A stretch of DNA of 64,000 nt from the IMG/VR virus record IMGVR_UViG_3300046787_000286, positions 124,001 to 188,000 of that record; one strand, given 5' to 3'. A program made the position numbers and the translations under genes. Below the pieces are notes generated by a model that saw only the letters and a program-made list of their open reading frames with translations, was not told the DNA's origin and searched no databases. Below, in pieces: positions 2 to 23,771 of this stretch. The stretch's first letter is position 1, and each line of letters opens with the position of its first letter.

Positions 2-1729
2 ATCAAAGTGACGCTCAAACGGATGTCCTTTTAGTAAACTAAATGTAGTAAGTAGTTTACCTTTTATTTGTCCGGTAAGGCCGCCTCCGGTATACTTGCC
101 AACTTGAATACTACCGCGTGTGCTTACTGCACCTTTGTTACGTCCACCCGCTCTAGTCTCATAGTATGAGTAAAGCATTGTTGGGCCATACTCCATTGGG
201 TCGTGTGGAACAAAGCGGGCTTTGATTGTTGTCTTTACAACGTTTTCTACACAGTCGAAGTCTTTGGCTACAATTTGTTTTACTTGTTCAATGAATTCGG
301 GCCATGGAATAAACTTACGTGATCCACCACCTTCATCCGGAACAAATTCGGTTAAGTGGGCTTCGTTCATTTTACCATCACTACTAAATCCATAATATTT
401 CGCTACATCTTGTAAATCACTAGGACGGTACTTGTTGAGAAAGTCTGATATTAAATCGTGGATGTGTCCGGAGTTCCCTGCTTGGTCTAATGCACCGGGC
501 AAAGGTATTTCACCATATTTCCATCTAATATGCACACCACCAGGACTGTCTATGTACCAACGTCTTCCGTCCCAGTCTAAACCAAATTTATCTACTGTTA
601 CTTTTAGTTGTATGTCTTTGGCCGGAGTACCTGGCACAGTCTCGCACCATATGTCAAATTGATTGTTGCGTAGATATCTTGATTTGTATGGCTTGCCGAA
701 GTTTGGCGGCACATATCTGTCTCCATCATCGCCATTACCTGGAGCGAACTCGTTTAGTTGGTCAGCTAGTTGTTCTTCACTCCAGCCAATGTAGCTATCA
801 CTATCATCGTCGCCGATACGCATAACATACGCACCGCCTTCCTCGCTTTCAAGCTCGCCAATTTCCCAACCGACTTTGGCTAAGGCTTGTTCTACTCGAC
901 GTTGTGTAGCTACATCTGGGGCAGAATACCACATTTTAGCAAATCGAAGTAACACATCTTCGGGGTCATTTTCTCTGTCGTTACCACTGCCGGGTGCAAA
1001 TTCGTTTAGTTCTTCATCTTCAGTCATGCTAAAGTCCTTCTTCATGAAGTCCTTGGTTCTAGACACTGCTGGCTGTATTTTTTTAAGTTTAGGTGGCTTG
1101 CTTCTAAACATCACAGAACCTAGCATATTACTTTCGTCTAGCGTGGTACCCATGGCTGCGTCTAGCATTTTAACAACAGTAGCAGCAAGTTTAGGATTTA
1201 TTTGTGTTTTTGGGTACAAACTCATTACAAGAGCTGTCTTACGTCTAGTATCCAATGTGGGCCATGCTGTGCGTATTTCTGTAGCACTAGTCATACCAGG
1301 ACCAAACTCCACTGTGGGCAAGTAAGCCATGTAAGCATGCTTATTCATCGGAGCAAGTTCATCTTGTCCTTCATAAGGTTGCAAGTATGCAGGGTTGCCA
1401 TCTTTTTTAACGCCGCCTGCTTGTGGTGGTTTGTTTGCGTCCTTTTCCGAACGTACAAAAATTAATTGGGTGGTTTCGGGATCAAAGTGATCTGTAACTT
1501 CTCGTGCTTGAAACGGTGACTTAACTTGTATGAATTTACCAGGATTAACGCCTGCTAGTTTAGCAAGTTTTTCTTTAACAGCAAACGGGAATGGTCTAGC
1601 GGATGTGTCGTTGGTTGCAGCCACATAGACATCTGCGCCGGGGAAAGCATCTTGTGCTTGTTGGTATAGTGCGTAATGGCCAGCGTGGAACGGATGAAAT
1701 CCGCCTGGCATGATAATAACTTGCTTCAT
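2..1729 (-). CDS. HxGH nucleotidyltransferase-domain protein with C-terminal modules (polyprotein-like); runs off the left edge
   Basis: Absent from ORF track (no stop in window). Manual translation MKQVIIMPGGFHPFHAGHYALYQQAQDAFPGADVYVAATND...; later in-frame junctions TLDE, ELNE-FAPG, QLNE-FAPG, HLTE-FVPD; TAAATA 6 nt upstream of ATG. Confidence 0.8.
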   Translation of the reverse strand, partial: MKQVIIMPGGFHPFHAGHYALYQQAQDAFPGADVYVAATNDTSARPFPFAVKEKLAKLAGVNPGKFIQVKSPFQAREVTDHFDPETTQLIFVRSEKDANKPPQAGGVKKDGNPAYLQPYEGQDELAPMNKHAYMAYLPTVEFGPGMTSATEIRTAWPTLDTRRKTALVMSLYPKTQINPKLAATVVKMLDAAMGTTLDESNMLGSVMFRSKPPKLKKIQPAVSRTKDFMKKDFSMTEDEELNEFAPGSGNDRENDPEDVLLRFAKMWYSAPDVATQRRVEQALAKVGWEIGELESEEGGAYVMRIGDDDSDSYIGWSEEQLADQLNEFAPGNGDDGDRYVPPNFGKPYKSRYLRNNQFDIWCETVPGTPAKDIQLKVTVDKFGLDWDGRRWYIDSPGGVHIRWKYGEIPLPGALDQAGNSGHIHDLISDFLNKYRPSDLQDVAKYYGFSSDGKMNEAHLTEFVPDEGGGSRKFIPWPEFIEQVKQIVAKDFDCVENVVKTTIKARFVPHDPMEYGPTMLYSYYETRAGGRNKGAVSTRGSIQVGKYTGGGLTGQIKGKLLTTFSLLKGHPFERHFD

Positions 1730-1757
1730 AGCAAGTATTTAGTTTACATGGTTTCTA

Positions 1758-2123
1758 TTAGTACACGACTGTGATTGAATCAATTTGCCCGGCACTAAAG
1801 TCTGTAATTTTAACACGCAGCCAAGTATAGTTGCCAGTTAGTGACACAGGGTAAACACCTGACACAATAGTAGATGCATCGCCGAATGTGTTTACATCTA
1901 CCCAGTTTGCTACTTCCCAGTTTTGATCAAGCGTGGCTTGAACAGTAATCACACCCTGGAATCCAGTGATGCGTTGATAAACTGTTTGTATTGCACCCTG
2001 ACCGCGATAGTAGCCCACTCCTTTGACACCGTCAGAGTCAAAGTCTGTACTGGAGCCATCGTAGTTGCCCGAAGGAACTCCGTATTGAGTTAGTCCTAAA
2101 ATGGTCAAAGTATTAACTGACAT
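1758..2123 (-). CDS. hypothetical beta-rich protein, possibly virion structural
   Basis: 121 aa ORF rich in G/T/S/V, downstream of a late TAAATA box. Confidence 0.6.
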   Translation of the reverse strand: MSVNTLTILGLTQYGVPSGNYDGSSTDFDSDGVKGVGYYRGQGAIQTVYQRITGFQGVITVQATLDQNWEVANWVDVNTFGDASTIVSGVYPVSLTGNYTWLRVKITDFSAGQIDSITVVY

Positions 2124-2311
2124 TATGCTCTCACAACTTCCACAACAATACCTTGTCCTAGCAACTCTTCTGCAACTGATTGCAGCGCATCACAGATGTC
2201 ATTGGTAGCCATAAGATCGCCAGTGCTGCTGTTTGCAACAGCATCAACTTCTTTGTCCTTGATCAGTTTTGAGAGTTTGATCACAACTGCTTCTTCGTAT
2301 ATTTTTGCCAT
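2123..2311 (-). CDS. small hypothetical protein
   Basis: 62 aa, TAAATA 7 nt upstream, coupled to next gene. Confidence 0.7.
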   Translation of the reverse strand: MAKIYEEAVVIKLSKLIKDKEVDAVANSSTGDLMATNDICDALQSVAEELLGQGIVVEVVRA

Positions 2312-2317
2312 AGTGTA

Positions 2318-3001
2318 TTATTTAGCCACGATCTGCTTGGTCTGCCGTGTGATATTAGGCACAACCATGTTCAGGAACAACAGCTCGCCGTCATTGTTGT
2401 GATCAATGAAGAAGTGGGCATGTGTCCAGTTTATCCACCAATTCTTAGTAGGAGTGTTGACCCAGTCTTTTAATCCCGGGCCCATACGTACATTCTCACG
2501 TGCCTTCAAGTATTCAACTAGTGTATTACGTTGGGAATCGTCGATTGCTTTGGATCTAAAATAAGTCCTATGAGTCCATTTTGGATCGTATAACGCAATT
2601 GTGCCCACTGGGCAAATTTGATGTGCTTCCTGTATTTGTATCTTGTCAAGAGTTGGCAAGTAATACAGTGTTTTTACTAAATCAAAGTCATTGGTATAAA
2701 CATACCCACGATCATAGGAAACTACAAACTTTAGTTGCTCTTTGTGACGAACTAATAAGCGACACAACTCCTCAAGGTTCTGTTGCATTCCTGAATCAAT
2801 CCGATGCATTTGAAAGCTGCCGCCGTAAAGCTGTTTGTGTTCTGTCCGCCAGCGATTACGCTCCTGTACTAATTTATCGATCTTATCAGGGTTCAGTCCC
2901 CTGATAATCCCGAGCTCGCGCAAATCAAATCTAACACTGTATCTGTATTTCCCGAAGAAAGGTTGATTGGTTTCCACGGGTTTTACTTTAAGGTTGGACA
3001 A
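2318..3001 (-). CDS. hypothetical protein
   Basis: 227 aa ORF overlapping clpA stop. Confidence 0.75.
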   Translation of the reverse strand: MSNLKVKPVETNQPFFGKYRYSVRFDLRELGIIRGLNPDKIDKLVQERNRWRTEHKQLYGGSFQMHRIDSGMQQNLEELCRLLVRHKEQLKFVVSYDRGYVYTNDFDLVKTLYYLPTLDKIQIQEAHQICPVGTIALYDPKWTHRTYFRSKAIDDSQRNTLVEYLKARENVRMGPGLKDWVNTPTKNWWINWTHAHFFIDHNNDGELLFLNMVVPNITRQTKQIVAK

Positions 3002-5231
3002 TTGTCAAACCCTCGACGGAAGTTTCTACAGTTTCAAACGCAATATTGTCACCGTCTAAGTTAGCAACTACAGAGCAATCACGCAGGTTATCAAACAAGA
3101 TCTTCTTTGATAATGGCACACGGATCAACTCATCAATCTTGCGTGACAGTGGACGAGCACCCATCAGCGGATCGTAACCCTTGTCTGCTAGATAGTCAAC
3201 AACACTTTCGCTCAGTGTGAGTTTGATGTTCTTGGTGTTCAAGCTAGTTTGCAGTTCATCCACAAACTTAACAACAATCTTCTTGATAGCAAGTTTATCC
3301 AACTTGCCAAACTTACAGATCTTGTCAATACGGTTACGCAGTTCTGGACGGAAGAACTCTTTGAGAGCTTTGTCATCTTCGCCTGTTTTCTCTTGCCCAC
3401 CAAAACCAATGTTTAGACGTTCACTATCCTTGGCACCCAAGTTTGATGTCATGATAATGATTGTGTTCTTACAGCTCACAGTCTTACCATTTGAACTTGT
3501 GATGCGACCTTCGTCTAGCATTTGCAAGAAGATGTTGACCACATCAGGATGTGCTTTTTCAACTTCGTCAAACAACATAACAGCATAAGGGTTCTTGGTC
3601 AAGTCACTGATCAACTTGCCACCGCCTACGTTACCGTCTTCAAATCCCACATAGCCCGGAGGAGCACCAATCAAGCTACTAACTGTGTGACGCTCTTGAT
3701 ACTCACTCATATCGTAGCGTAACAGTGTCATGTCCAGATTATCTGCCAACAACTTAGCAAGTTCTGTTTTACCTGTACCTGTTGGGCCCAGGAACAAGAA
3801 GCTAGCAATAGGTTTCTTGTCGTTACCGATACCTGAATAGTTAATGTAAACACGTTCCAGCACTGTGTCCACAGCAGAGTCTTGTCCGTAGAGCTTTTGC
3901 TTGATGTTAGTTTCGAGCTCCGCAATGTTAGCAGAGCGCTCGTTTTGCAACTTGTCTAACGGAATACCCAAGATCTTGCTAACTTGCTCTTCGATCATGC
4001 TCTTGGTAACGGAAACGTTGCCTTGGTCCTTAACACGTTGTCTAGCACACGCACCATCGATGAGATCGATTGACTTATCGGGATTCTTTCGATCATGAAT
4101 ATATCGGCCCGATAGTTCCACTGCGGCGGTGATAGCTTCAGTTTCGATGAGGACATTATGAAAAGTTTCGAGTCGGGGAGAGAGCCCAATGAGAATCTGT
4201 TCTGTTGTACTAGGAGTTGGCTCATCAATGGCCACGCGATGGAACCTACGCATAAGGGCTCGATCTTTCTCAAAGCTCTCGTAATATTCTTCCCATGTAG
4301 TAGATGCAACAACTTTTAGGTTTCCTTTGGTAATTGCTGGCTTGAGCATGTTGGCAAAGTCTAACGAACTGTTATTGCCTGCACCTGCACCTTGCATGGT
4401 GTGAGCTTCGTCGATGAACAAGATGCAGTTTTTCTTTGCTTCCAACGCACCGATCACAGCACGGAACTTTTCTTCAAACTCGCCGCGATATTTAGATCCT
4501 GCAAGCAATGCAGAAATCTCAAGACTCCACACCTCGTGATTCTTCAAGAACTCAGGTACATTGTTATTGTTTACTTCTTGCGCAAGACCTTCAATGATAG
4601 CAGTTTTACCAACACCAGGATCGCCTACCATAAGCACGTTTGCTTTAAAACGTCGAGCCAACACAGTGATCATTTCTTCTAGCTCTTTGCTTCGACCGAT
4701 CATGGGCTCTAATCGATTTTCTTTAGCTAGTTTGGTTAAGTTAGTGCAGTGCTCACTCAAGATCTCACTTGCTTGATCTGGGCTCAACTTTTGAGCTTCT
4801 TCGTGTGCATAATGCTTTTGCCAGAATGCCACAAACTCACGGCTCTTGACACCGTACTTGAGCAAGAAATATTGTGCATGACTATTGTGTTCGGCCATGA
4901 TAGCCAAGTACAAGTCGATAGTAGTTAATGTAGTTCGGCCGGTAAAGGATACTTGTGTAAATGCGCGATTAATAACACGCACTAGAGCCTCAGTCTTCTT
5001 GGGCTTTGTAATGTCCATTTTAACTAGATTAACCAAGCTATCCAGGTAAGCACCAAGCTCTGATTCAAACTGCTCACTTGCTACGCCAAATTTATCTAGG
5101 CATTTTCTAAACGGGGCATGTTGTAGCATAGCCATTAACAAATGCTCTGTAAGCATGTATTCATGATTGCGAACATGCGCTAATTTAATAGCTGAGTCGA
5201 TGATTTGTTCAATTTCGGGATTGTTTTGCAT
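2988..5231 (-). CDS. clpA: ClpA-type AAA+ unfoldase
   Basis: Clp N-domain (EHLLMAML), Walker A GDPGVGKT and GPTGTGKT, Walker B LFIDEAH and LFDEVEKAH, IGF ClpP-docking loop, no ClpB middle domain. Confidence 0.93.
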   Translation of the reverse strand: MQNNPEIEQIIDSAIKLAHVRNHEYMLTEHLLMAMLQHAPFRKCLDKFGVASEQFESELGAYLDSLVNLVKMDITKPKKTEALVRVINRAFTQVSFTGRTTLTTIDLYLAIMAEHNSHAQYFLLKYGVKSREFVAFWQKHYAHEEAQKLSPDQASEILSEHCTNLTKLAKENRLEPMIGRSKELEEMITVLARRFKANVLMVGDPGVGKTAIIEGLAQEVNNNNVPEFLKNHEVWSLEISALLAGSKYRGEFEEKFRAVIGALEAKKNCILFIDEAHTMQGAGAGNNSSLDFANMLKPAITKGNLKVVASTTWEEYYESFEKDRALMRRFHRVAIDEPTPSTTEQILIGLSPRLETFHNVLIETEAITAAVELSGRYIHDRKNPDKSIDLIDGACARQRVKDQGNVSVTKSMIEEQVSKILGIPLDKLQNERSANIAELETNIKQKLYGQDSAVDTVLERVYINYSGIGNDKKPIASFLFLGPTGTGKTELAKLLADNLDMTLLRYDMSEYQERHTVSSLIGAPPGYVGFEDGNVGGGKLISDLTKNPYAVMLFDEVEKAHPDVVNIFLQMLDEGRITSSNGKTVSCKNTIIIMTSNLGAKDSERLNIGFGGQEKTGEDDKALKEFFRPELRNRIDKICKFGKLDKLAIKKIVVKFVDELQTSLNTKNIKLTLSESVVDYLADKGYDPLMGARPLSRKIDELIRVPLSKKILFDNLRDCSVVANLDGDNIAFETVETSVEGLTIVQP

Positions 5232-5280
5232 ATTTTCCAGTTTGAAAGTTATGTGTTAATTATACGCTACCCTGAAATAT

Positions 5281-6069
5281 TTAGCGACCTGTTTGTTGCC
5301 GAATTAGTGCTAATAGATCTTCGGGTATGTTTCGGGGAATTTCTGCTTGTAATCGAATCATCATGTCCCCGGGATTTCGGGATCGATCCGGTAAACCTCG
5401 CCCGCGACAACGAAGGATTTGACCTGGTTGTGTCATTGGCGGAATGGCAACGTTTAGTTCACGATTTAGGATATCCTTGACCATGATGTCACCACCTGCA
5501 ATCATGGTCCAAATATCAACCTTTTGGTCAGTGTACAGGTTGTACCCATCGCGTTGCCATTTTGGATTTGGGTGAATTCTAAATGTGACCACTAGATCTA
5601 CACCACCAGGTGCTAGCCCCGGGTACATTACCGACGCACCATCTTCTACGCCAGGCGGGATATCAATTTCTACAATTTGACTACCGGAATGACTGCCCAC
5701 ACTAACAGTTCGTTTTCCACCGGAAGCTACATCACTTAACTGAATCCATAAACTCATTCTAGCCTGGGCAGGCCGTCGTTGTTGGTTATGATTAAACTGT
5801 GCCCCAAACATGTTGAAGATGTTGTCAAAGTCAAATGGTTGCCCACCTGCTTGACGGAAACCAAATTGACCAAAGTCGGGACGCGGAGTATCGTGTGCTG
5901 CACGTTGCTCTGGGTCACTCAGTACACGATATGCTTCTTCAAGCTCTTGGAATTTGGCCGTGTCGCCGCCTTTGTCCGGATGAAATTTTGATGCCAGCCG
6001 TCTATACGCCTGCTTTATTTGTTCCGGAGTTGCAGACTTATCAACCCCAAGTGTTTCATAGTATTTCAT
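5281..6069 (-). CDS. dnaJ: DnaJ/CbpA-type J-domain chaperone lacking the zinc finger
   Basis: YYETLGV...HPDKGG J domain, G/F-rich linker, DnaJ C-terminal domain. Confidence 0.92.
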
Positions 6070-6680
6070 TTACTTTTACAATTATCAAAGTGGAATCGTT
6101 TCATATTGCTATTGCCACCTGTTTTCTGACAATGCGGACATTCTACTATCTTTTGTAGGCACGGCTTACCTATTTTAGCTAATGAGATTTTCTTACCTGT
6201 TTCCTTAGAAACTATTCTACCTTTATTTGACAAGGAGTTTTTTAATTTACTTTCCTCGCTTTGCGGCTTGCCTATTTTACCTTTTTTTGATCTAGAGATG
6301 TTTTTGTTATGTTCTGAACTGTTAGGTCCTTTTTGCCTACCCTTTAACGTAGCCGACCGCTTTGCATTGCTTTCCGGCGAATGTATTATTTTTGCCCCCG
6401 ATGATCCTTCCCCGCCGTCGGTCAGATTTCGTAGTATTCCAGTGTTGGTATTAATTCTTCCCCACCATTTTATTAATCTTCGTTCTAATGCTAGTGCTCC
6501 TATTTCGGACAAATTTTGTTCTAGCACAACAATGTATTTTCTATCCGTTGGAATACGTATTCCATGTTTTTCGTATAGTCTTCTTCCTTTGCCTTTACCT
6601 ATATAGTAAGGTGAACCTGCACACCCATTCTTAGAGCTTTGGCTCCTGATGTAAGCATAGACGTAATAACCTTTTAACAT
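6066..6680 (-). mobile_element. free-standing GIY-YIG-like homing endonuclease with NUMOD3-like repeats
   Basis: YYVYAYIR...PYYIGKG, NLTDGGEG, HSPESNAKRS/SEEHNKNIS-type repeats, C-terminal CPHC...MKRFHFDNC; start moved to ATG 5 nt after TAAATA. Confidence 0.8.
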
Positions 6681-6729
6681 AAAGTTATTTATCAAACTTA
6701 CCTTAGTCAGGGTGATGTTGGCAATGTAA

Positions 6730-7059
6730 TTATACTACTTGACCATGGGTTTCTACAAATTTTTTGAGTGCTCGGGATCTAGCAATGAGTAAACGAATCT
6801 TGACATAGTCACTTAGTTCATCTGATTCGTTGGGCTCTAGTTTAAAACGATAACGACGTTGCGGCATTATGTCTTCGTCGTCTACTGCGTCCCAGGGATC
6901 AACTCCAGCAAAGTTAATAGCAGTGTATCTGTGCGGGTTGCTACGAAGTAGTTTGGGCTTTTTAATTGTGGCTGTGTGTTTAGCGTCACTCACAGGCGAT
7001 GGTTTGGCCAGAGCCGAAAAAGATAAAGCAACAAAAAGGATAGCAACAATTATTCGCAT
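6730..7059 (-). CDS. hypothetical secreted protein
   Basis: N-terminal signal peptide MRIIVAILFVALSFSALA. Confidence 0.7.
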   Translation of the reverse strand: MRIIVAILFVALSFSALAKPSPVSDAKHTATIKKPKLLRSNPHRYTAINFAGVDPWDAVDDEDIMPQRRYRFKLEPNESDELSDYVKIRLLIARSRALKKFVETHGQVV

Positions 7060-7095
7060 AGTATATACAACGCCTTAGCCCAGGGTTACGCTGAC

Positions 7096-7120
7096 AAAAA
7101 AAGGCTCCGAAGAGCCTTTT
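7096..7120 (-). terminator. intrinsic terminator with cUUCGg loop
   Basis: ggctc-TTCG-gagcc hairpin followed by a T run on the minus strand. Confidence 0.85.
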
Positions 7121-7138
7121 GTTTTGCCAAATGAATAT

Positions 7139-7357
7139 TTATTTCTTTGGAGGAATTTCAGTTCCTTCGTGCTTTTTGTGAATCTTGATAATCTTACATG
7201 CTTGGCGCACAGAGCCATCTTTATTTTTAGCAGGCTTGCCATCCTTGCCAACCACGTCTTTACAAACTGTTTTGGTTGTTTTGGCTACTGGTGGTTCTTC
7301 TGCAGATGCTGTAATACACAGTGTTGCAAGTGATAGTGCGATTAATAATTGTTTCAT
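7139..7357 (-). CDS. small secreted Lys-rich protein
   Basis: MKQLLIALSLATLCITASA signal peptide; start corrected using upstream AAGGA RBS. Confidence 0.7.
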   Translation of the reverse strand: MKQLLIALSLATLCITASAEEPPVAKTTKTVCKDVVGKDGKPAKNKDGSVRQACKIIKIHKKHEGTEIPPKK

Positions 7358-7367
7358 TTTGTTTCCT

Positions 7368-7952
7368 TTAAATTTCTGGGTGATCGGGTTGTGCAGGACC
7401 TGGTTTGCCTGATGCACTTGTTGTTACCGCTGCGAACGCTGGCGTTGCAGGTGCGCTTCCAAAGCTGCTTGGAGCAGGGCTGATTGGCGCTGCTGATCCG
7501 AATCCTGGCGCACTAGGTGCTGCACTTGGTGTGCTAGCGCCGAAGTTCCCTGCTGGCGCAGAAACGCTAGGTGCTGGTTGTTGAGTGATTGACGATTGGC
7601 CATTTGCTGCTCCTAAGTCTGGGCTGGGCAAACCTGCTGGGGTTGCAGCTTGTCCTGCTAGTTTTTCTTGTGTTCTACCGTAAGCTGATACGCCTAACAC
7701 AGCACACATTGATACATGGAATAATCCGCCACCTTGTAGTGTAATAGGCACCCATTGACGGAATGCATCATTTGATGCTTGTTCTTCCCAGAACTGAACT
7801 ACTGTAAACATAATTGGGAAGATAGCAAAGTCTGACAAACAGCAGGTAATGTACATAAATGCTGCGCACGGACGCCAGTATTTTTGCATCCATTCGCCCT
7901 TGGTCATTGTTTCCACTGCCTGAGGTTTTTCTTTTTTCTTGTTATTAAACAC
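7368..7952 (-). CDS. 3TM holin-like membrane protein with Pro/Ala-rich tail
   Basis: WRP motif, hydrophobic segments, LGVSAYGRTQEK, as in GTA-type 3TM holins. Confidence 0.65.
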   Translation of the reverse strand: MFNNKKKEKPQAVETMTKGEWMQKYWRPCAAFMYITCCLSDFAIFPIMFTVVQFWEEQASNDAFRQWVPITLQGGGLFHVSMCAVLGVSAYGRTQEKLAGQAATPAGLPSPDLGAANGQSSITQQPAPSVSAPAGNFGASTPSAAPSAPGFGSAAPISPAPSSFGSAPATPAFAAVTTSASGKPGPAQPDHPEI

Positions 7953-8143
7953 GGAGACTCCTTTGTTGTTATTATTATGTGAGTATTTACCGTTTTAGAG
8001 TTTTAGATTGATCCACTTGGTTACAATTGCAACAACTAAAAAAATCAGCGTAGTAATAGCAGCCGATAATAAATTAAGCATTATTGCAGCAAACCATACC
8101 CCATTAGCTAAAAAGCTATTTAAAAATCTTCTAATCATTATTG

Positions 8144-8926
8144 TTATCGTCCTGTATACTGTTTGGGTAATGCTGCAATTCTACGTTGTTCTTCAGTCAT
8201 TGGTATCCACCCGTCTCCAAGGTGTGGATACTTTCGTATTCTATCTTCTACTACCAAAGCAAATGAAAGTCCTACACTTGCTGCCATTACTAGCCCAGTT
8301 ATACCCAGTGCTATTTCCACTCTGAGTCTTTCTAGGCGACGCCGTCTTCTAGCACGGGTAGCTTGTTGGTTGTCCATTTGGCGAGCAATAAGCACACGTT
8401 GAGTTTCTCCCATGTGTTTCATCATTGCTTCTACTTCTGTGTATAGTGCGCCCAGTTCCGGAGGCGATTGATACACCATTAGTTCACGCAAGTCTACACT
8501 CATCTGTTCTAGTTGCTTGCGCATTAGCACACGCTGTAGAGCACGTTTACCGAGACTTGCATCTCCAGTGTAAACTTCTTCTTCTGCACGACGTTCTTCT
8601 TCATCAAACACAGCCATGCACTTGTAGAAGTTGTCGTAGTACTCGCCCAGGTGATCGCCAATTTCTCTGTAGATGCCATCGTGCTGGCCTTCGTTGGCTT
8701 TTTTGTTTAGTTCCTTAACACGATTCTTTTCTTCAATGAACTGTTGCTTGGCTTCTATAGACGCAGGTTTTTCTGGAGGATGCAGCTTTTTAAACTGTTC
8801 GTCCATGTCTTTAAGGACGTCCTTGACCTCCCCGGCCGCGCCCTTGATATCTTTATATAACTTACAGCCAGCTTTTACGGCGTTGACCGCACCGTTCGCT
8901 AGCGCAAACAGCGTTAATGGATCCAT
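8144..8926 (-). CDS. coiled-coil membrane-anchored protein
   Basis: MDPLTLFALA N-terminus, helical body, C-terminal TM segment. Confidence 0.7.
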   Translation of the reverse strand: MDPLTLFALANGAVNAVKAGCKLYKDIKGAAGEVKDVLKDMDEQFKKLHPPEKPASIEAKQQFIEEKNRVKELNKKANEGQHDGIYREIGDHLGEYYDNFYKCMAVFDEEERRAEEEVYTGDASLGKRALQRVLMRKQLEQMSVDLRELMVYQSPPELGALYTEVEAMMKHMGETQRVLIARQMDNQQATRARRRRRLERLRVEIALGITGLVMAASVGLSFALVVEDRIRKYPHLGDGWIPMTEEQRRIAALPKQYTGR

Positions 8927-9016
8927 ATTCTTCTTCTTATTCTAGGATCGCTTTCGTGAAAAAGCCCCGTATTATTTACAGGGCCTTTGCGTTAGATTAA
9001 ACTGTCGCTTAATAAA

Positions 9017-9553
9017 TTAGAACCACAACCAAATACCTTGACTTAGTAACAGCACACCGATCACAGCTACTACTTCTGATACCTTGTACATTGTGTTATT
9101 CACAGCAATGATACTTGCAGATAACAAAACAATAGCAAGTTGGAATGCCATACTAGCAAATGTTAGCCATGGTGAATGCTTTGCAGCCTCGTCACGAGCT
9201 GCTTCAAACGCTTGTGCTTTTGCTAGTAACTCTTTCTTGCCTTCGCCTGACTTTGGGTCGCTTTCGTAACGCTCAATCTTGGCTTCTAGTTTTTCCGCAC
9301 GAGCCTTGTCACCTTTGGATCGAGCATCTTCCAGTTGACCTTCTGCAATAGAACCTTTGATACTCTTTGCTTGGAAGAAAGCGTATGTATCAGTTGCCTT
9401 TAACATATTCTTCATAACAGCGCCTGAGTGCGAGTTTGCAAAGTATGTAGTAATACCCATGAACAATGCCATGACTACAATTACCAAACCAGCTTTGTCT
9501 TTGATTTGTGCTTCACGTTCTGAACGTGTGAGGGGTTTCTTTTCTTCTGCCAT
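9017..9553 (-). CDS. membrane protein (DUF4337-like)
   Basis: TM - YAFFQAKSIK - coiled coil - two TM segments; GGAGG RBS. Confidence 0.7.
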   Translation of the reverse strand: MAEEKKPLTRSEREAQIKDKAGLVIVVMALFMGITTYFANSHSGAVMKNMLKATDTYAFFQAKSIKGSIAEGQLEDARSKGDKARAEKLEAKIERYESDPKSGEGKKELLAKAQAFEAARDEAAKHSPWLTFASMAFQLAIVLLSASIIAVNNTMYKVSEVVAVIGVLLLSQGIWLWF

Positions 9554-9574
9554 TGTGGCCTCCTTGTGAATTAT

Positions 9575-10561
9575 TTAACCGCGTTCTGGAAAATAGTCTA
9601 CAATACTACTTTGCCTGCGTATGTCTACTGTAATGCAGTGCATGCCGCCGTCCCAAAATCCACGACAACGGAATGGTACCCAATGCACTGTGATACCGCG
9701 TTCACTTAGTGTCTGCTCTAGTGCCCCATTATAGCCCAGCATCATTACAGTGGATTCGTTTATTACCAAACAGTTTAGTTCGAAGAATGTTTCTGTGTAA
9801 TCGCCTACCCAGTCTTGAGCATGCTTGATAACATGCTCGTTGAAACTGCGATTTAATTCAACGCCTTCTGCATAAAACTTACCATTGTATTCCCCGCCTA
9901 CAGGGGGTGTAGTTCTGTGATTCCAGTATGTGGATTCACTTAAAAAGATACATTCCCATCCTGGAAAATTACGTTCGTACCCATCATAGTAATGGTTAGC
10001 AATGATCAGTCCTGGCTTGAGAATAGCAAAGCAGCCGTCCATGTGGCCGCCATTCTTTTCCCAGGTGATTCTGTAGTCTTTAAAAAGATTTAAATTGAGC
10101 TCTGGTGCGTCAAATATATCAGTATCAATAACAATATCTTTGCCTAGTCGCACAACATTGGCGCCATTGATAACGTGATTTGCACCAGGTGCAGTTTGTT
10201 TGTTGTATAACGCTAACGTGCTACGCCACGCTGCGCCTGCGTTGTATGGCGTTAGTAATGTGTTGCCCACTGTTAGAAATGTATCTCTAGGACATATCTC
10301 AGGCTTAGTTAACACACCATTTGAGTCAACAAAATCATTTATGTTGAGGTATTCCGGACGGCGTACTGTGATACCAAATGATTCTAATTTGCTTTGTATT
10401 ACAGCCAGGTCCTGTTTTGTTATTTCAGTTATTTTATAAAATACATCACGCACAGCAGGATCTAAATGATCGTACCAGGAACTGGGGTATACATCTCCAA
10501 GCCAGACTTCTTCCAGTTGACTCCATGAATTGTGACTGTTAATCAATACAGGTCTTTCCAT
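9575..10561 (-). CDS. amidinotransferase (pentein fold; glycine/inosamine amidinotransferase-like)
   Basis: NSHNSWSQLEEVWLG, CPRD, HMDG, GGMHCITVDIRR motifs. Confidence 0.85.
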   Translation of the reverse strand: MERPVLINSHNSWSQLEEVWLGDVYPSSWYDHLDPAVRDVFYKITEITKQDLAVIQSKLESFGITVRRPEYLNINDFVDSNGVLTKPEICPRDTFLTVGNTLLTPYNAGAAWRSTLALYNKQTAPGANHVINGANVVRLGKDIVIDTDIFDAPELNLNLFKDYRITWEKNGGHMDGCFAILKPGLIIANHYYDGYERNFPGWECIFLSESTYWNHRTTPPVGGEYNGKFYAEGVELNRSFNEHVIKHAQDWVGDYTETFFELNCLVINESTVMMLGYNGALEQTLSERGITVHWVPFRCRGFWDGGMHCITVDIRRQSSIVDYFPERG

Positions 10562-11760
10562 TTATCTACTAGGTAGTTCTTTAGATCCACTGGGGTCTTT
10601 ATGTTGTTTTGGCGCATGAAGTTGTTGATCTTTGCAGCACTAGCGTAGTCTGCATTACCGGGCTTGCGGGCATTGCTTAGATCAACGCCTAACCCGTCGT
10701 CTTCATTTCTATAGCCCTGTCCGTACACTATAAGACTCTTTAGTTTGCGCTGAGCCGACGGAGTTAGTTCTGTCTTGGCTTTTTTATAGATCAATTCCAG
10801 CCAGTCTTCCAAATAGTTACGACTCGGACTAAATGATCTGCGAACCGGCTGCGCACCTTTTAGCAACTCGCCTGCTTGAGCTGGGCTAACTGCTTTTCTT
10901 TTATCCTGTAGTTTCCAAGCTGTTTCGTCTGTGTATAAGAACGCAGGAATACCTTGTTTCTTTGCTGATAGTAATACTGTGCGCACTTCTGGTGAACGAT
11001 TTTCCATTTGTTCTTTTAACAGCACATGAACTTCTCGAATGCTTTCTGCATTAGCAGGGATAGCAGGAGTTCGACTATACACACGGTCTTCTGCTTCTCT
11101 AGAACGTGTGCCATCTGAGTGCAGCCATGAACGATTCCAATAATCAATGGGCCTTGTTTTGTAGTTGTTGTTTAGCCAAGAGCCATTCAACACAAACATC
11201 GCAGCTGAACTGCCCACATAACGATTATGGTAGTCCCCTACTCGTGTTCTTGTGGTGCTTAGGAAATAAGGATAGCCAGGAATCTCATAGTCCTTTTCAG
11301 CTTGTGTTCCTGTAGAGCTTGCTAGTAGAAACTCTCCAGAAGTTAGGATACGTGCTGCTGCTGCGGTATTTGTATAGTGATACAAAATAGCCGACGCTGC
11401 TTCTGTTAATTGTTCTTCTTCCCACACACGTTCTTCACCGCGATGCTTGTCCCAGAAATTCGATCCAGCATCAGTTTGGTCAAAACTTCTGTTGATACGG
11501 TACCCGTGAGTTTTTACGAAATCATACATCACTCGAGCAACACCTTGCCCACGATACTGGTCTTTGATAAACAAATCTTGCGCTTCTAAATCATACATGT
11601 CAGTTACTTCGAAAGTAACATGGCCGATCTCTCTACGGCCAGATGGGTCATACACAGTTACAATGACTTCGTCATCGCCCTCGACTATTCTGAATCTAAG
11701 CCCACTAAACTCTTCAGTGGGTTGCTCTTTATATTCTACAATGAATTCTGCTGCTCTCAT
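10543..11760 (-). CDS. putative head-packaged protein: leader + GNAT acetyltransferase + ADP-ribosyltransferase-like domain
   Basis: Start MRAAEFIVE 5 nt after TAAATA; GNAT motif A YRGQGVA; linker EEQLTE; ART-like LYHYT...FLSTTR...EAEDRV. Confidence 0.7.
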   Translation of the reverse strand: MRAAEFIVEYKEQPTEEFSGLRFRIVEGDDEVIVTVYDPSGRREIGHVTFEVTDMYDLEAQDLFIKDQYRGQGVARVMYDFVKTHGYRINRSFDQTDAGSNFWDKHRGEERVWEEEQLTEAASAILYHYTNTAAAARILTSGEFLLASSTGTQAEKDYEIPGYPYFLSTTRTRVGDYHNRYVGSSAAMFVLNGSWLNNNYKTRPIDYWNRSWLHSDGTRSREAEDRVYSRTPAIPANAESIREVHVLLKEQMENRSPEVRTVLLSAKKQGIPAFLYTDETAWKLQDKRKAVSPAQAGELLKGAQPVRRSFSPSRNYLEDWLELIYKKAKTELTPSAQRKLKSLIVYGQGYRNEDDGLGVDLSNARKPGNADYASAAKINNFMRQNNIKTPVDLKNYLVDKWKDLY

Positions 11761-11768
11761 ATTAATAT

Positions 11769-12263
11769 TTAATTGCTTTGATAAGTTGCACCATAGCCAA
11801 CCCAAGCAGGTGCGGTGTATCCTTGGGGATATGCTTGAAGATGTTGTATAGTACGATGCCAACCTTCAATCAAGTCATACCCATTATTTAATTTAGCAAC
11901 AATAATAGGTTCTTCACTTACACCGGTTTGTTGAATCATTTTTAATTGCTGTGCGTGACGTTCTGCATCTTTTGGTACTTTATATGGATTAGCCAAACCG
12001 CCTTCGCGACTGTGAATCATTTGTTGTGTTTTGGGTGTAAAAATGTCTAGTGTGATAGGTAGCTTTTGTAAACGCCATTGTACTTGACCAAAGTCTTGTT
12101 TATTTCTTTTTAGAAAATCATCTAGTTCAGCTTGGCTTCTAATACCTTTTGCTTGTTGGTATAAAAAGTCTTTTAACACGTAATCAGGCCAGGTGGGAAA
12201 CTGTTGCTTGACATAAGCAAATAATGATCCCCTGGACTCTGTTAGGAATTCTTGTGCTCTCAT
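11769..12263 (-). CDS. putative head-packaged ParB/Srx-like domain protein
   Basis: Leader MRAQEFLTE; PIIV...YDLIEGWHR ParB-N motif. Confidence 0.7.
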   Translation of the reverse strand: MRAQEFLTESRGSLFAYVKQQFPTWPDYVLKDFLYQQAKGIRSQAELDDFLKRNKQDFGQVQWRLQKLPITLDIFTPKTQQMIHSREGGLANPYKVPKDAERHAQQLKMIQQTGVSEEPIIVAKLNNGYDLIEGWHRTIQHLQAYPQGYTAPAWVGYGATYQSN

Positions 12264-12264
12264 A

Positions 12265-12882
12265 TTACAACACCCAAGGATCGTTAATTACAGGCGTGCC
12301 ATTGGCTCGCATCATGATGTTGCCATCGTGCAAATCCCAGGCGTAGCCAGCACGGTCGCCTATAGCTTCAAGTTTCCGAGCAGTCTTTAAAAATTGTGTG
12401 ATACCCTCTACACCAAATTGCTTTATTAATTTGGCGTAGGTGTTGGGGTTTGTTTCTTGAACATGTCTAAGAGTAGTCTTTATTGAATCGTAGTCTATTA
12501 CGTCTGACACCATGCCCGATAACACAGTACCTACTGAACCTGAATCCTTTAGCGGCTCTGTGCGAATCATTAGATAGCGATGTTTTTCATCGTCGTCCCA
12601 GGGATGCCAAAAGAAACTTTCGTGTCCATAAAATCTTGGCAAGAACGGATTTGATTGATTCTTCTCGCAGAACTTGTACCATCTAAAGAACATTTTATGA
12701 TCTTGGCTGAACTGAGCTGTTTCGCCTGTGCCAAATATCTTTAAGACATGCCCTGTACCGGGTTCCATAAATGCAGTTTGGTCCACGCCTTGACCTAGGT
12801 ACTTGTAGCCTTTCTTTTTCAAGGCATTGATTACAGACTGGTCTGTTTCAGAATATTCGTCTAAAAATTCGTGAGATCTCAT
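12265..12882 (-). CDS. putative head-packaged protein-kinase-like enzyme
   Basis: Leader MRSHEFLDE; LGQG glycine loop, VLKIF, DLHDGNIM catalytic loop, INDP. Confidence 0.75.
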   Translation of the reverse strand: MRSHEFLDEYSETDQSVINALKKKGYKYLGQGVDQTAFMEPGTGHVLKIFGTGETAQFSQDHKMFFRWYKFCEKNQSNPFLPRFYGHESFFWHPWDDDEKHRYLMIRTEPLKDSGSVGTVLSGMVSDVIDYDSIKTTLRHVQETNPNTYAKLIKQFGVEGITQFLKTARKLEAIGDRAGYAWDLHDGNIMMRANGTPVINDPWVL

Positions 12883-13184
12883 TTCACACCTTCGAATATT
12901 CTTTTCTGTATCGCATACCATTCCTGCCACTGATCTACTTTTACAGCACATTCGTAATAGGTTGAATAGTTTGTAACTACTGTAGACGTTAGTCCACTTA
13001 GCTTCACGTCATTGGGGACGGTTTGTAGTTGTGGGCACTCACCTAGTCCTAGTCTAGGAGCATCAGGAAACTTTGCTGAGACAGGAACAGTTGTAGAACA
13101 ACCAGTAATAGCAAGTATTACCATGATAACTAGTGCAAAAATAATTACACTAGATACAATTTGTTGATCCTGTTGATTTTTCAT
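12879..13184 (-). CDS. lipoprotein, o-spanin (Rz1)-like
   Basis: Lipobox ITGC, Pro-rich periplasmic part with two further Cys; near i-spanin and endolysin. Confidence 0.65.
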   Translation of the reverse strand: MKNQQDQQIVSSVIIFALVIMVILAITGCSTTVPVSAKFPDAPRLGLGECPQLQTVPNDVKLSGLTSTVVTNYSTYYECAVKVDQWQEWYAIQKRIFEGVK

Positions 13185-13185
13185 A

Positions 13186-15126
13186 TTAGCAGTTCCAACG
13201 TCTACGTGCTTTACAAATTGCTTTGTCTGGAGTTTTAGCACATGAAATATTGTGCATGTTCATTTGACCTTTGGAGCGTGAGCAGTAGCTCTTTCTGCGT
13301 TTGCTTGCTTTAGAGCCCTTCTTTAGTTTAGAAGGCTTGGTAGTAACTGCTGTTTGCAGCTTTGATCCAGGATTTGCTCTGCGATATGCTTTTACAGCCT
13401 TGCGACTCATGCCGTCTGTTCTGTCACTCTTGTTGGCTTTTTGCCAGTCTTCGTTCAACTGAGAAGTCACGGCAAACACATACAGTTCATCGTGTGATAA
13501 AGATTCTAAATCTTCCCAAATCATTTCGGGATCTACGCCATTATGATCTGCAATTCGGTTAATAGAAGATTCAATTAAATCAAATTCTTCCGTTAATTCA
13601 GGATCTATACCTTGTGCTTTTTCGCTTTGTAGATAATCCCATACTGTCACAAGATAATCTTCAGCCAGGCTGATCTTTTCTTGACACCATTCAGGCAAGT
13701 TATCGCGATCGTCGATCACTTGTTGCAAGCCTTCTACAGCATTCTTTAGTGTGTGCAAGCTGCCGTGTGCCATGCCTGCTTCGTCATCGTACTCGGCATT
13801 GTAGTCTTCTGCTGCGCCTTGCTCTGTGATCCCACCGTCGCTGTCAAATCTTGGCTGAGTTCTTCCTGCCTGACCGCCTTGGGTCATATTACGCCCATTG
13901 CTTGGTATTCTTTTGGGTCCAATGGCTGGCGGCGATTTAAACGCACGGTTGCTTAGTTTAACAGTAGTACGACCTGGCACAGTGCGATCTATTGCAAGCC
14001 CAGTTTTTGGATCATGGGCAGCTCGCGCATAAAATGCAAGCTCGTCTCTAGTAAATCCGTCTTTTTCTTGGTGTGGCTCTGCTAGTGCCGCTAATTGATC
14101 TTTAATTCGTTGGCGTTCTGTGCTATTGTTAGTTGCGTGTAATTGCTTTTGCAACAGATGTCTCTGGTATATACGCTCATGCTCTTCATCATCGTCGTTT
14201 AAGCCTTCCGCCACACCTTCTTTAGTCTTTAAGCGTTTGAGAACAGCCATGTTCTCAGGCTTGCTCATGGTTTTCTTCAATGCGTCCAGCGCACGATCCT
14301 GTATGGCTTTGCTAGTCATCATACTATCTGGACCAATATGAATGTCTGGACCATTACTTGTATTGTGCTTGTCTCTTGACCCGTATGTGCTATGTCTCTT
14401 ACGATTGCTACCGTCACGTCCTGCACCGTCGCCGTCCATTTCTTTGATCTTATTGCCTTGTTGGTCAATGCCCGAGTTTGGTGGAAGATATACCTGCTTA
14501 CATGGCATGCATACTTGAACAGCATGTCCCTGGTACTTGCCACCTTGTAAGTCTCCGCCGCACTTGGGGCATGTGTGCATGTGGGAAATATCGCCGCGAT
14601 GCTTCTTTGGAAACTGTACAACTTCGCCTTCCTCTACAGATTCTTTTGGAACACAGTTATTAACTCGCACCCCACCCTTGACTTTGGTCTTGGGATTGCC
14701 AATTTTTTTGTTGTCCCAGCAAGCAGGATCCAAGCGAACTTTTTCTTCCGCTACACCTTGCTCAATGATGTCACCGCGAGCTTTAGCAACTTTAAACAAT
14801 GCAAACAAACTATCCCAGTCATGGGTGTTATTCATTTTGTCTTTGTATAGCTGTTGCTTTTCTGGTTTAATCTTAGCTAGGAACTTGTGCTTCATGCTGT
14901 GATTAGACGGAAATCCTGAGTAGTCATTGCCCAAATCTTTTACAGTGTAATCAAAGCCTTCGTCAATTGTTTTTAACTGACTGCGCAACTGATCTGCCAT
15001 TTTTAAATGATGATCACGTTTGATATCTTTGCTCTGCTTGGCAGCTTTTTCGTGAGCAGTAATTTGTGCCCATAATGCGTTTTGTTTACGCTGGTCTTTG
15101 TCTTCGTTGATTTCGTCGAATCTCAT
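13186..15126 (-). CDS. multi-module polyprotein-like putative internal head protein (646 aa)
   Basis: Start MRFDEINE; about 9 dissimilar modules separated by IDE, QGVAE, SVEE, IKE, EGVAE, QGAAE, LTE, LNE. Confidence 0.75.
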   Translation of the reverse strand: MRFDEINEDKDQRKQNALWAQITAHEKAAKQSKDIKRDHHLKMADQLRSQLKTIDEGFDYTVKDLGNDYSGFPSNHSMKHKFLAKIKPEKQQLYKDKMNNTHDWDSLFALFKVAKARGDIIEQGVAEEKVRLDPACWDNKKIGNPKTKVKGGVRVNNCVPKESVEEGEVVQFPKKHRGDISHMHTCPKCGGDLQGGKYQGHAVQVCMPCKQVYLPPNSGIDQQGNKIKEMDGDGAGRDGSNRKRHSTYGSRDKHNTSNGPDIHIGPDSMMTSKAIQDRALDALKKTMSKPENMAVLKRLKTKEGVAEGLNDDDEEHERIYQRHLLQKQLHATNNSTERQRIKDQLAALAEPHQEKDGFTRDELAFYARAAHDPKTGLAIDRTVPGRTTVKLSNRAFKSPPAIGPKRIPSNGRNMTQGGQAGRTQPRFDSDGGITEQGAAEDYNAEYDDEAGMAHGSLHTLKNAVEGLQQVIDDRDNLPEWCQEKISLAEDYLVTVWDYLQSEKAQGIDPELTEEFDLIESSINRIADHNGVDPEMIWEDLESLSHDELYVFAVTSQLNEDWQKANKSDRTDGMSRKAVKAYRRANPGSKLQTAVTTKPSKLKKGSKASKRRKSYCSRSKGQMNMHNISCAKTPDKAICKARRRWNC

Positions 15127-15584
15127 TTCAGTTCCTTGTTCTCTGCCGCAGCATTGTGTGCCTTTACTACTGCACCGGGTATAACACAACTGTTGTCATA
15201 TCGGGCAACTTCTCGATCCACATATTGTTTAATTATGACACCTTTTTCTCGGATAATCTTAATCTTTTCTTTTCCCTTAGCAGCCAGTTGTTCGTTAGCT
15301 GCTTGTGATTGTTGTTCAGCCAGTGCTACTCGAGCTTCCATTTCACGCACACGTTCACGCCAGGACATTTCTGAACTATATCCACCTTGGAAATAAACGC
15401 CCGATAAAAGAACTACTACAGATACTACCTGTGCAATCTTTATGTGCGGTGCCAGTGTGGGAATTAATCTGATCACATGCTTTAGTAAAAAGCAAGTTAA
15501 CACAGTGGCTAGTATACCTGCAATGAGAACTGCATCTACTACAAATGCTAGAAAAGAGTCAGGAAGTAGATGCAGAATAAACAT
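15123..15584 (-). CDS. i-spanin (Rz)-like inner membrane protein
   Basis: N-terminal TM helices, coiled coil, late Cys; directly downstream of endolysin. Confidence 0.65.
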   Translation of the reverse strand: MFILHLLPDSFLAFVVDAVLIAGILATVLTCFLLKHVIRLIPTLAPHIKIAQVVSVVVLLSGVYFQGGYSSEMSWRERVREMEARVALAEQQSQAANEQLAAKGKEKIKIIREKGVIIKQYVDREVARYDNSCVIPGAVVKAHNAAAENKELK

Positions 15585-21297: not shown

Positions 21298-21944
21298 CTA
21301 TCAATTAGTCGGAATGCTGCATCGTGTGCAGCTTCTAAAGGATGCAGGGTCTGACTAATCTCAAACCCATTTTCTTTGCTCCACTCCAGTAGGTTTTTAT
21401 TGTCAAAGCGTGTCATGTAAGGTTCGCAATAGCCTTGCAGTGCTGACACAGCAGGAGTAGTATTCCATCTAGCATCAAACATTAGATCGTCCATGTAAGT
21501 CATAATAAACTTGTTGCCCGACGCCTTTAACGAATCTATTGCAGTTTTGACATTGATCAAGCTGGTGATTTTATCCCGCAATTCGCTATGATAATGTTTG
21601 TAGTATGTTTCGGCAGCAGGATCTGTATCAACTGGCATTACTGTTTGCCAAGGTGATCTCCACAACTTGTGTTCTTCTGTTGTGGTAAAACTAAACCTAT
21701 CAATCCAGCTCCAGCCTATTACATATACAGCTGGTTCTACATCAGTTAATTGACTCAACACACGCTCAGTAATTTCTAAATTACCAGCCCCGGGGCGGGC
21801 ATAGCATGTGTAATCCCAGTTGTGTTGTTTGGCCAACAGTGCAGGCCATGTGTAGTTGCTGTATGTGGCCTTGGCCAAATATCTACTGTCATCGTGTAAA
21901 TCAGTTCCGAAAATGAAACTGCATCCAAAACTCTTTAATTTCAT
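21282..21944 (-). CDS. SGNH-like hydrolase/acyltransferase
   Basis: FGCSF block I, ARPGAGN, VIGWSWIDR, C-terminal HPLEAAH. Confidence 0.7.
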   Translation of the reverse strand: MKLKSFGCSFIFGTDLHDDSRYLAKATYSNYTWPALLAKQHNWDYTCYARPGAGNLEITERVLSQLTDVEPAVYVIGWSWIDRFSFTTTEEHKLWRSPWQTVMPVDTDPAAETYYKHYHSELRDKITSLINVKTAIDSLKASGNKFIMTYMDDLMFDARWNTTPAVSALQGYCEPYMTRFDNKNLLEWSKENGFEISQTLHPLEAAHDAAFRLIDSYNLV

Positions 21945-21965
21945 AACGAAATTACTTAGCGAGTT

Positions 21966-23696: not shown

Positions 23697-23734
23697 GTTA
23701 TTATTTAGCCAAGTGCGGGCATAGCGTGAGCAAA

Positions 23735-23760
23735 GAAAAACCCACCGAAGTGGGCAAAAA
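23735..23760 (-). terminator. intrinsic terminator with cUUCGg loop
   Basis: cccac-TTCG-gtggg followed by a T run. Confidence 0.8.
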
Positions 23761-23771
23761 TCTATTAGACA

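Follow-up and report, generated by a model that had tools for sequence, protein, structure and literature searches.

How a phage gene comes to join an acetyltransferase to an ADP-ribosyltransferase (ART), and whether the two would stay joined, is the question raised by an open reading frame (ORF) of 405 codons, here called P0001. It lies on the minus strand of a 64,000-nucleotide stretch of viral DNA (the window; bases 124001-188000 of the 214-kb IMG/VR record IMGVR_UViG_3300046787_000286, estimated to be 62% complete). P0001 (10543..11760 of the window) runs from an ATG at 11760 to a stop codon at 10545-10543 and consists of a short leader, a GNAT domain of reduced size (mini-GNAT), a linker, an ART-fold domain, and a helical tail. 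An initial annotation had described a GNAT and an ART-like domain in one chain, split by a QLTE site. Both folds were recovered, and all strings quoted in that annotation are present in the protein, including the leader MRAAEFIVE (residues 1-9), LYHYT (126-130), FLSTTR (166-171), EAEDRV (222-227), and LFIKDQYRGQGVARVMY, which represents GNAT motif A (R-x-x-G-x-A). The reading favored here, at slightly better than even odds (about 0.55), is that P0001 is packaged into the head of a Rak2/Atu_ph07-like phage, cleaved by a prohead protease of the S77 family, and injected as a mini-GNAT together with an ADP-ribosylating ART.

The identity of the C-terminal domain is evident from its predicted structure. 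Residues 116-405 had no match in Pfam, PHROGs, NCBIfam, or PADLOC, a profile search of PDB sequences with 134 copies of the domain returned no ART, and the sole recurrent Pfam signal among these 134 members was a weak one, Tox-ART-HYD1 (nine members, best E = 0.008). The AlphaFold2 model, which is based on an alignment of the same 134 diverse copies (A2), has a predicted local distance difference test score (pLDDT) of 94.8 and a predicted template modelling score of 0.90. DarT and Tpt1 head its Foldseek matches at weak E-values (about 1e-3), and when 48,161 PDB representatives were searched without bias, members of the ART superfamily made up about 46 of the 50 best matches. The neighbors include Tpt1/KptA, DarT, CC0527, TreX, Scabin, the pertussis, cholera, and LT toxins, diphtheria-like toxins, pierisin, PARPs, Tne2, MbcT, and SpvB. 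The split beta-sheet typical of ARTs spans residues 118-287, which bears out the ART-like fold proposed in the initial annotation; the core itself comprises residues 121-287 (10900..11400, minus strand).

The conserved residues of the domain follow the H / S-T / E-x-E layout that had been proposed for P0001, and this layout is maintained across the 134 copies. Strand 1 carries [YF]127-H128-[YF]129-T130, with H128 in 132 of 134 copies. The next core strand carries [YF]165-[FY]166-L-S168-T-T-R171 (Y165-F-L-S168-T-T-R171 in P0001), with Y/F165 in 132 copies, S168 in 133, and an invariant R171. In the motif E222-x-E224-D225-R226, E222, E224 (134/134), and R226 are invariant; E224 lies at the start of the strand that follows the loop resembling the ADP-ribosylating turn-turn (ARTT) loop, and E222 precedes it by two residues, the E-x-E arrangement. 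A catalytic triad of the H-Y-E or R-S-E type, distributed over strands 1, 2, and 5, is present in the domain. Further conserved positions are G175-x-Y177-H178, D206-Y207-W208, R219, H245, and R260.

The alignment with the DarT of Thermus pairs model residues 123-284 with chain residues 8-209 and places H128 and T130 on H13 and T15, which in DarT bind the ribose next to the adenine of NAD+ (PMC9967889). R171 may correspond to R51, the unusual catalytic arginine of DarT. The domain has neither the strand-1 arginine of the T4 Alt/VIP2 R-S-E clade nor similarity to Alt, ModA, or ModB. The initial annotation had envisaged two protein-modifying enzymes. The two folds stand, but the ART half is not Alt-like, and because its nearest structures, DarT and Tpt1, act on DNA and RNA, a protein target is unproven for this half. 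The closeness to DarT and Tpt1, the invariant arginines, and the basic helical tail make a nucleic-acid target at least as likely as a protein.

An ART fold may also serve other chemistries. The domain might be a Tpt1-like RNA 2'-phosphotransferase or RNA-repair enzyme, an NADase that depletes NAD+ or counters its depletion, or an inert binding module, none of which would modify a macromolecule by ADP-ribosylation. This is improbable, although NADases and NAD+ phosphorylases with an ART fold are known (PMC9503650), the structural matches include MbcT and Tne2, and the frequent NUDIX partners of the family would fit a metabolism of soluble ADP-ribose. By contrast, the invariant glutamate in E-x-E-D-R occupies a position that is hydrophobic in the H-H-h clade of Tpt1, and the combination of E-x-E with S-T-T-R is a transferase signature. 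Moreover, Tpt1 needs an N-terminal RNA-binding lobe, whereas the ART domain of P0001 begins only five residues before strand 1. The conserved set of polar residues in more than 1,400 clusters argues against a pseudo-enzyme.

The family to which the domain belongs is large. An exhaustive HMMER search recovered 1,431 clusters (50% identity) at E ≤ 1e-3 and 837 at E ≤ 1e-10. Among 150 family representatives, 72 stand alone and 78 are fused to other segments. Matches among 90 flanking segments identify GNAT as the most common fusion partner (9-10 segments), followed by NUDIX (7), DUF5661 (6), ART-PolyVal, GH19 lysozyme, NTP_transf_2, and ParB_N (3 each), LysM and dCMP deaminase (2 each), and SLT, RegB, and PARP (1 each). 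The domain is also embedded in proteins of up to 1,708 amino acids together with NUDIX, ParB_N, lysozyme, nucleotidyltransferase (NTase), and ART-PolyVal domains. Polyvalent proteins, which are predicted to be embedded in the virion and injected, typically have GNAT as a neighbor of ART (Iyer et al. 2017, PMC5512222). With its two domains, P0001 falls within the range of 2-15 conflict-related domains per chain that characterizes this class. No peptidase domain, and hence no embedded MPTase, was found in P0001, and the putative metallopeptidase DUF6782 occurs in one of the 90 flanking segments.

The N-terminal partner is a truncated GNAT (residues 10-115; 11416..11733, minus strand), which is acidic (isoelectric point [pI] 4.8). 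Its acetyl-CoA-binding motif A is located at residues 69-75 (Y-R70-G-Q-G73-V-A75), and G73 and A75 are invariant in 16 homologs. Fifteen of these homologs match GNAT models at E ≤ 0.01, with a best value of 4.2e-7 (Acetyltransf_1), and three stand-alone homologs have precomputed PF00583/PF13508 matches. The module also occurs as a stand-alone gene of 114 amino acids whose product ends in RVWEE.

The two domains are connected by a disordered acidic linker (EERVWEEEQLTE; residues 107-120; 11401..11442, minus strand), for which the full-length model gives a pLDDT below 50. The linker includes WEEEQLTE (residues 113-120) with L118-T119-E120 at 11409-11401, exactly where the initial annotation had placed it, and a predicted internal prohead-protease site, LTE/AASA (the slash marks the predicted cut). 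Most of the close relatives of the ART domain (up to 95% identity) are stand-alone proteins of 294 amino acids, and because these begin with MRAQEFLTE/AASA..YHYT, the junction (WEEEQLTE/AASAILYHYT) is read as a former N-terminal leader, in which the end of the GNAT gene has probably taken the place of M-R-A-x-E-F. The QLTE site between the domains is thus upheld as a conserved boundary motif but is better interpreted as the vestigial leader of a formerly separate gene.

A glutamate is located five positions before the hhYHYT anchor in 167 of 171 ART copies, and leucine or isoleucine seven positions before it in 163; in the alignment of the domain, E120 is conserved in 131 and L/I118 in 130 of 133 sequences. 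The [LI]-x-E motif is retained even in 30 of the 32 internal ART copies, whose upstream sequences are otherwise unrelated. ART homologs of two other phages, Dickeya phage JA13 and Pseudomonas phage Lu11, have no leader or a different one, which indicates that the ART fold does not need [LI]-x-E.

The separate genes for the stand-alone ART in most close relatives and for the stand-alone GNAT ending in WEE could also mean that P0001 is an artefact of assembly or annotation, in which a sequencing error has joined a GNAT gene to an ART gene. However, the reading frame is open across the junction, and the absence of MRAxEF from a second leader at this point is incompatible with a simple read-through of a stop codon. 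The same GNAT-linker-ART architecture is present in at least five other metagenomic proteins, whose linkers differ (WEEDLTE, WEEELTE, WEAEQLTE, WEESELTE). This recurrence in independent proteins excludes an assembly artefact, and a GNAT-GNAT-ART protein in a syntenic relative likewise speaks against an explanation that is very improbable overall.

That syntenic relative (L009) encodes a GNAT-GNAT-ART protein of 528 amino acids and lacks the kinase and ParB-like genes found upstream in the window. Another syntenic relative (L019/L020) encodes the ART by itself, immediately preceded by a different GNAT-like ORF, and one family representative has the reverse order, ART-GNAT. The recurrence of the pairing in fused and unfused form, and in both orders, hints that the two enzymes may be linked in function. 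A phage contig that is unrelated (L010) encodes a protein with the leader MRITEIITE (3249-3989), which contains both a GNAT-like segment and another domain of a different kind ("AYHITT"); it is located directly upstream of a stand-alone ART copy (MRATEFIIE) and represents another independent GNAT/ART pairing.

The phage itself is represented by its family-B DNA polymerase (polB), which is most closely related to that of Sinorhizobium phage Phosso (52% identity), followed by Agrobacterium phage Atu_ph07 (46%) and the GAP32/121Q/Rak2-like group (about 43%). These are jumbo phages and distant members of the T4 replication superfamily. Judged by its polymerase, the window phage is probably a Rak2/Atu_ph07-like jumbo phage. 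A megablast search of the locus against 50,697 phage records gave no match. The ART domain is absent from all five close relatives by polB (82-83% identity; G003-G007, the contigs behind L043, L051, L061, L079, and L076), which identifies the ART gene as accessory.

The leader of P0001 (MRAAEFIVE, residues 1-9; 11734..11760, minus strand) resembles the capsid-targeting sequence (CTS) of T4 in the form M-[RK]-x-x-E-[FI]-[LIV]-x-E and is predicted to be cleaved off after E9. Its F6, [LIV]7, and E9 correspond to F7, I8, and E10 of the T4 CTS (MKTYQEFIAE), in which targeting depends on Tyr4 and Phe7, and processing by gp21 on Ile8 and Glu10 (PMC9026906). Starts of the form M-R-x-x-E-[FI] are present on five ORFs of the window, encoding a DUF6321 protein, a T7 gp0.7-like kinase, a ParB-like protein, the GNAT-ART protein, and an unknown protein of 209 amino acids. 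A stricter pattern at the DNA level (M-R-x-x-E-F-h-x-E) occurs five times in the genome, namely in four of these ORFs and in a gene for an unknown protein of 156 amino acids outside the window; it does not match the DUF6321 protein (MRFDEINE). A NUDIX protein elsewhere in the genome starts with MRAHEF but has no [LIV]-x-E downstream. As in the internal proteins of T4, a leader of about ten residues with an aromatic residue and [LI]-x-E is common to otherwise unrelated proteins.

The same system is found in related genomes. The stricter pattern occurs two to four times per genome in four relatives, always on the coding strand, whereas the reversed control pattern does not occur at all. These genomes (G003, G004, G006, and G007) are four of the five relatives without ART domain, and each has two to four leader-bearing genes; the leader system is conserved among these relatives, with a variable cargo. 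The codons of the leaders differ synonymously and the DNA upstream of the leader genes is not conserved, which indicates that the signal is the peptide and not the DNA.

A protease that could act on such leaders is encoded by several of the related phages. Peptidase_S77, the gp21 family, is above the Pfam cut-off in Phosso, Atu_ph07, GAP32, SCTP-2, and the T4-like Vibrio phage K566, and in three of the five large contigs with 82-83% identical polymerases, one of which is 97% complete. In this contig (G003; protease at 84747-85190), the acidic core protein encoded beside the protease starts with MNRFEQLIEY. The T4-type, phiKZ-type, and SPN3US-type prohead proteases all cut C-terminally to glutamate in short motifs (PMC5694885). 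Homologs in S77-bearing phages have leaders that end in glutamate (MKKFNEFANELAE followed by AVND in K566; MNLNE followed by SLSA in SCTP-2), whereas in the two phages without an S77 match the homolog lacks a leader (JA13, MKPLYHFT) or has a different one (Lu11). The presence of the leader tracks that of S77; the sample is small, but the correlation is in the right direction. Phage Lu11 (L021) has three ART paralogs (4908-5822, 5992-6939, and 8136-9017), all starting with MKIQLA, which hints at lineage-specific targeting peptides. The initial annotation had pointed to the injection of Alt by T4, an apt precedent given the resemblance of the leader to MKTYQEFIAE and the gp21-type proteases of the phage's relatives.

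Taken together, these features suggest the following course of events. The leader MRAAEFIVE would act like the T4 CTS and recruit the precursor to the core of the prohead, where a gp21-type S77 protease would cut after the glutamate of each [LI]-x-E, removing the leader after E9 and severing the linker after E120 (LTE/AASA). In T4, an aspartate in place of this glutamate prevents processing and leaves targeting intact. The mature head would then contain the acidic mini-GNAT and the basic ART-fold enzyme as separate, free proteins, both of which would enter the host with the DNA. There, the ART, with its DarT-like H-x-T ... R ... E-x-E site, would use NAD+ to ADP-ribosylate a host macromolecule, and the GNAT may use acetyl-CoA on a host target or in the same pathway.

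It is also conceivable, if rather unlikely, that P0001 is never packaged but acts in the cytoplasm as an unprocessed bifunctional enzyme, for example in early takeover or anti-defence, with LTE as a mere relic of the fusion. MRAxEF would then be an N-terminal signature of the lineage that serves translation initiation or coupling, stability, or localization. The case for packaging is indeed indirect, and the gene cluster is surrounded by non-structural genes, with no head module nearby in the 214-kb record. T7 gp0.7-type kinases, to which a neighboring gene is related, act early in the cytoplasm (PMC5512222). Several of the leader genes abut the preceding gene and lack a Shine-Dalgarno sequence, so that their 5' coding region could matter for translation; P0001 itself starts eight nucleotides after the stop codon of the upstream gene, with no Shine-Dalgarno sequence in the spacer. 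However, the synonymous codon variation in the leader reveals selection on the peptide, the leader agrees with the experimentally defined T4 CTS at the functional positions, and its presence tracks that of S77 in the few genomes tested. Moreover, the [LI]-x-E at 30 of 32 internal junctions can have no N-terminal role there, and the fusion partners of the family include lysozyme, LysM, and SLT, which are typical of virion-delivered proteins.

Several observations weigh against a packaged and cleaved pair of enzymes. Neither Peptidase_S77 nor capsid families of the gp23 type were found in the 214-kb record, and tblastn searches of this record with the protease, the acidic core protein, and the scaffold of a relative gave no matches; because the record is only 62% complete, the head genes are taken to be lost with the missing sequence rather than absent. 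One relative that is 99% complete also has no S77 match. The conservation of [LI]-x-E could result from shared ancestry or from a structural role at the N-terminus of the ART domain. As to the enzymes themselves, the sequence of the ART domain does not match any ART family above threshold, its residue equivalences are derived from secondary structure and alignment ranges rather than from inspected superpositions, and no partner that removes ADP-ribose (Macro, ARH) was found in the genome. The GNAT scores below the cut-off of Acetyltransf_7 in Pfam (23.4 bits versus 27; E = 8e-5) and does not have the full fold, as the N-terminal helices alpha1 and alpha2 are missing; it could be a CoA-binding or regulatory module. 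All phage homologs of P0001 are annotated as "hypothetical".

The helical sub-domain at the C-terminus of P0001 (residues 288-405; 10546..10899, minus strand) is basic (pI 9.7) and is absent from the homologs of T4-like Vibrio phages. Its structural neighbors are limited to weak matches among integrase SAM-like and helix-turn-helix domains (template modelling scores 0.37-0.47), which represent a lead rather than a finding, and an Atlas feature search with the same residues gave no usable match. T4 RpbA, which emerged for this tail as the only lead of the profile search of PDB sequences (E = 0.057), was rejected on account of its hhalign probability of 6.7%. A longer version of P0001 that starts with TTG at 11862 was likewise rejected, as it overlaps the upstream gene and is not supported by homologs.

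The window genes described below are, like P0001, encoded on the minus strand. The 3' end of P0001 shares 19 nucleotides with an ORF of 328 amino acids (9575-10561) that has no leader, a weak match to the arginine-deiminase/amidinotransferase fold (PF02274, E = 0.046), and a match to phrog_25854 (6.5e-12). This ORF is always located directly downstream of the ART gene, with an overlap of about 19 nucleotides, in the window and in L009, L019, and L020, and the constancy of this arrangement suggests translational coupling or a functional link with the ART gene. Upstream of P0001 is the gene of the ParB-like protein (11769-12263; 164 amino acids; weak match to phrog_3264, E = 0.007), whose leader MRAQEFLTE is identical to that of the stand-alone ART genes; ParB domains are typical modules of polyvalent proteins. 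Further upstream is the gene of the kinase-like protein (12265-12882; 205 amino acids; leader MRSHEFLDE), which matches the T7 gp0.7-type kinase family phrog_15752 (E = 8.6e-10). The kinase gene is missing from L009 and so has the look of a cassette insertion at a variable effector locus.

The gene of the DUF6321 protein (13186-15126; 646 amino acids), which has a zinc-ribbon-like segment, a C-terminal DUF6321 (E = 1e-7), and a match to phrog_727, is retained upstream of the locus in L009 and L019. The remaining leader gene of the window encodes the unknown protein of 209 amino acids (21966-22595; MRATEFISE). Outside the window, at 116185-117686 of the genome and also on the minus strand, are the genes of the NUDIX protein (MRAHEF; NUDIX E = 4.5e-16), which also carries DUF6934, and of the unknown protein of 156 amino acids (MRANEFVVE). 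Other regions outside the window (1239-15566, 21878-28696, and 86761-88080 of the genome; L004, L006) encode a giant ORF of 4,775 amino acids, three consecutive radical-SAM-like ORFs, and an aminotransferase, which may form a pathway for the hypermodification of DNA or nucleotides. Such a pathway would become relevant if the injected ART acted on host DNA that is unmodified.

Effectors that are packaged into phage heads (T4 Alt, the internal proteins, and the polyvalent proteins) act before all other phage molecules once a cell is infected, and few of them have been characterized. The concept of injected effectors is already known, because polyvalent proteins have been described as such (PMC5512222) and head-packaged ARTs beyond T4 have also been anticipated (PMC9503650). 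The literature search, whose scope did not include the supplementary lists of PMC9503650, found no paper on the present ART family or on a CTS in Rak2-like phages. What appears to be new is the ART family itself, which is unannotated and distinct from ART-PolyVal, the CTS-like leader in the Rak2/Atu_ph07-like lineage, and the use of protease-type [LI]-x-E boundaries in place of an embedded MPTase.

The ART-fold family is very large, unannotated in four libraries, and fused to conflict domains in about half of its members, and it has now been provided with candidate catalytic residues. The leader would extend the idea of the T4 capsid-targeting sequence to Rak2/Atu_ph07-like jumbo phages and could serve to load foreign proteins into their capsids, and [LI]-x-E at module boundaries offers a simple rule by which multi-enzyme precursors may be separated without an embedded peptidase. 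Should its target be DNA or RNA, the ART would be a phage equivalent of the defence toxin DarT. A wider interpretation, which is tentative and on balance doubtful, is that leaders of the form M-[RK]-x-x-E-[FI]-[LIV]-x-E and internal [LI]-x-E motifs constitute a portable "load and release" code, by which jumbo phages of the T4 superfamily would deliver strings of interchangeable enzymes that are separated by the prohead protease, and that the cargo includes a large, unnamed family of injected DarT-like ARTs that ADP-ribosylate nucleic acids of the host and not its proteins. If so, the family would mirror, on the side of attack, the toxin DarT with which bacteria defend themselves, and the propeptide or the fusion with GNAT possibly keeps the ART inactive until maturation.

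Among known systems, Alt and the internal proteins IPI-III of T4 share with the present genes a short N-terminal leader ending in [LI]-x-E (MKTYQEFIAE in T4; MRAQEFLTE or MRAAEFIVE here; PMC9026906, PMC3012670), its removal by a gp21-type protease (predicted here), a variable set of unrelated small effectors that have only the leader in common, a basic mature module, and an ART in the cargo. By contrast, the ART of P0001 is of the H-type and resembles DarT and Tpt1, whereas Alt belongs to the R-S-E clade; the host phage is a jumbo phage and not a Tevenvirus; and two modules are linked by the internal [LI]-x-E within a single precursor, whose packaging is predicted from sequence.

The similarity to DarT (DUF4433, PF14487), the toxin of DarTG systems that modifies thymidine or guanosine in single-stranded DNA, extends from the [YF]-H-x-T of strand 1, with H128 and T130 on H13 and T15, to an invariant arginine after strand 2 (R171 versus R51) and a glutamate in catalytic position (E224 versus E160). 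It is purely structural, as neither P0001 nor any of the 134 members matches PF14487 at E ≤ 1, and the present family differs by its shorter ARTT region with an E-x-E-D-R motif and by the helical C-terminal extension. Moreover, DarT is part of a bacterial toxin-antitoxin system, whereas P0001 is encoded by a phage without a DarG-like macrodomain partner. Unlike Tpt1/KptA, the family has no N-terminal RNA-binding lobe, which in Tpt1 carries the Arg-His-Arg of the catalytic tetrad, and has an invariant glutamate in place of the hydrophobic residue of the H-H-h clade.

Polyvalent proteins (PMC5512222) draw on the same repertoire of ART, GNAT, kinase, ParB, NUDIX, NTase, and lysozyme domains, with GNAT as the most common partner of ART. 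Relatives of the ART domain also occur in multi-domain proteins of 600-1,700 amino acids, and delivery with the DNA is predicted in both cases. However, the ART of P0001 represents another family, as ART-PolyVal (PF18760) occurs separately in the same proteins, and its release would proceed via the [LI]-x-E sites of the prohead protease instead of an embedded MPTase metallopeptidase. Finally, the modules that polyvalent proteins combine in one chain are, in the window phage, mostly unbundled into tandem leader-bearing genes.

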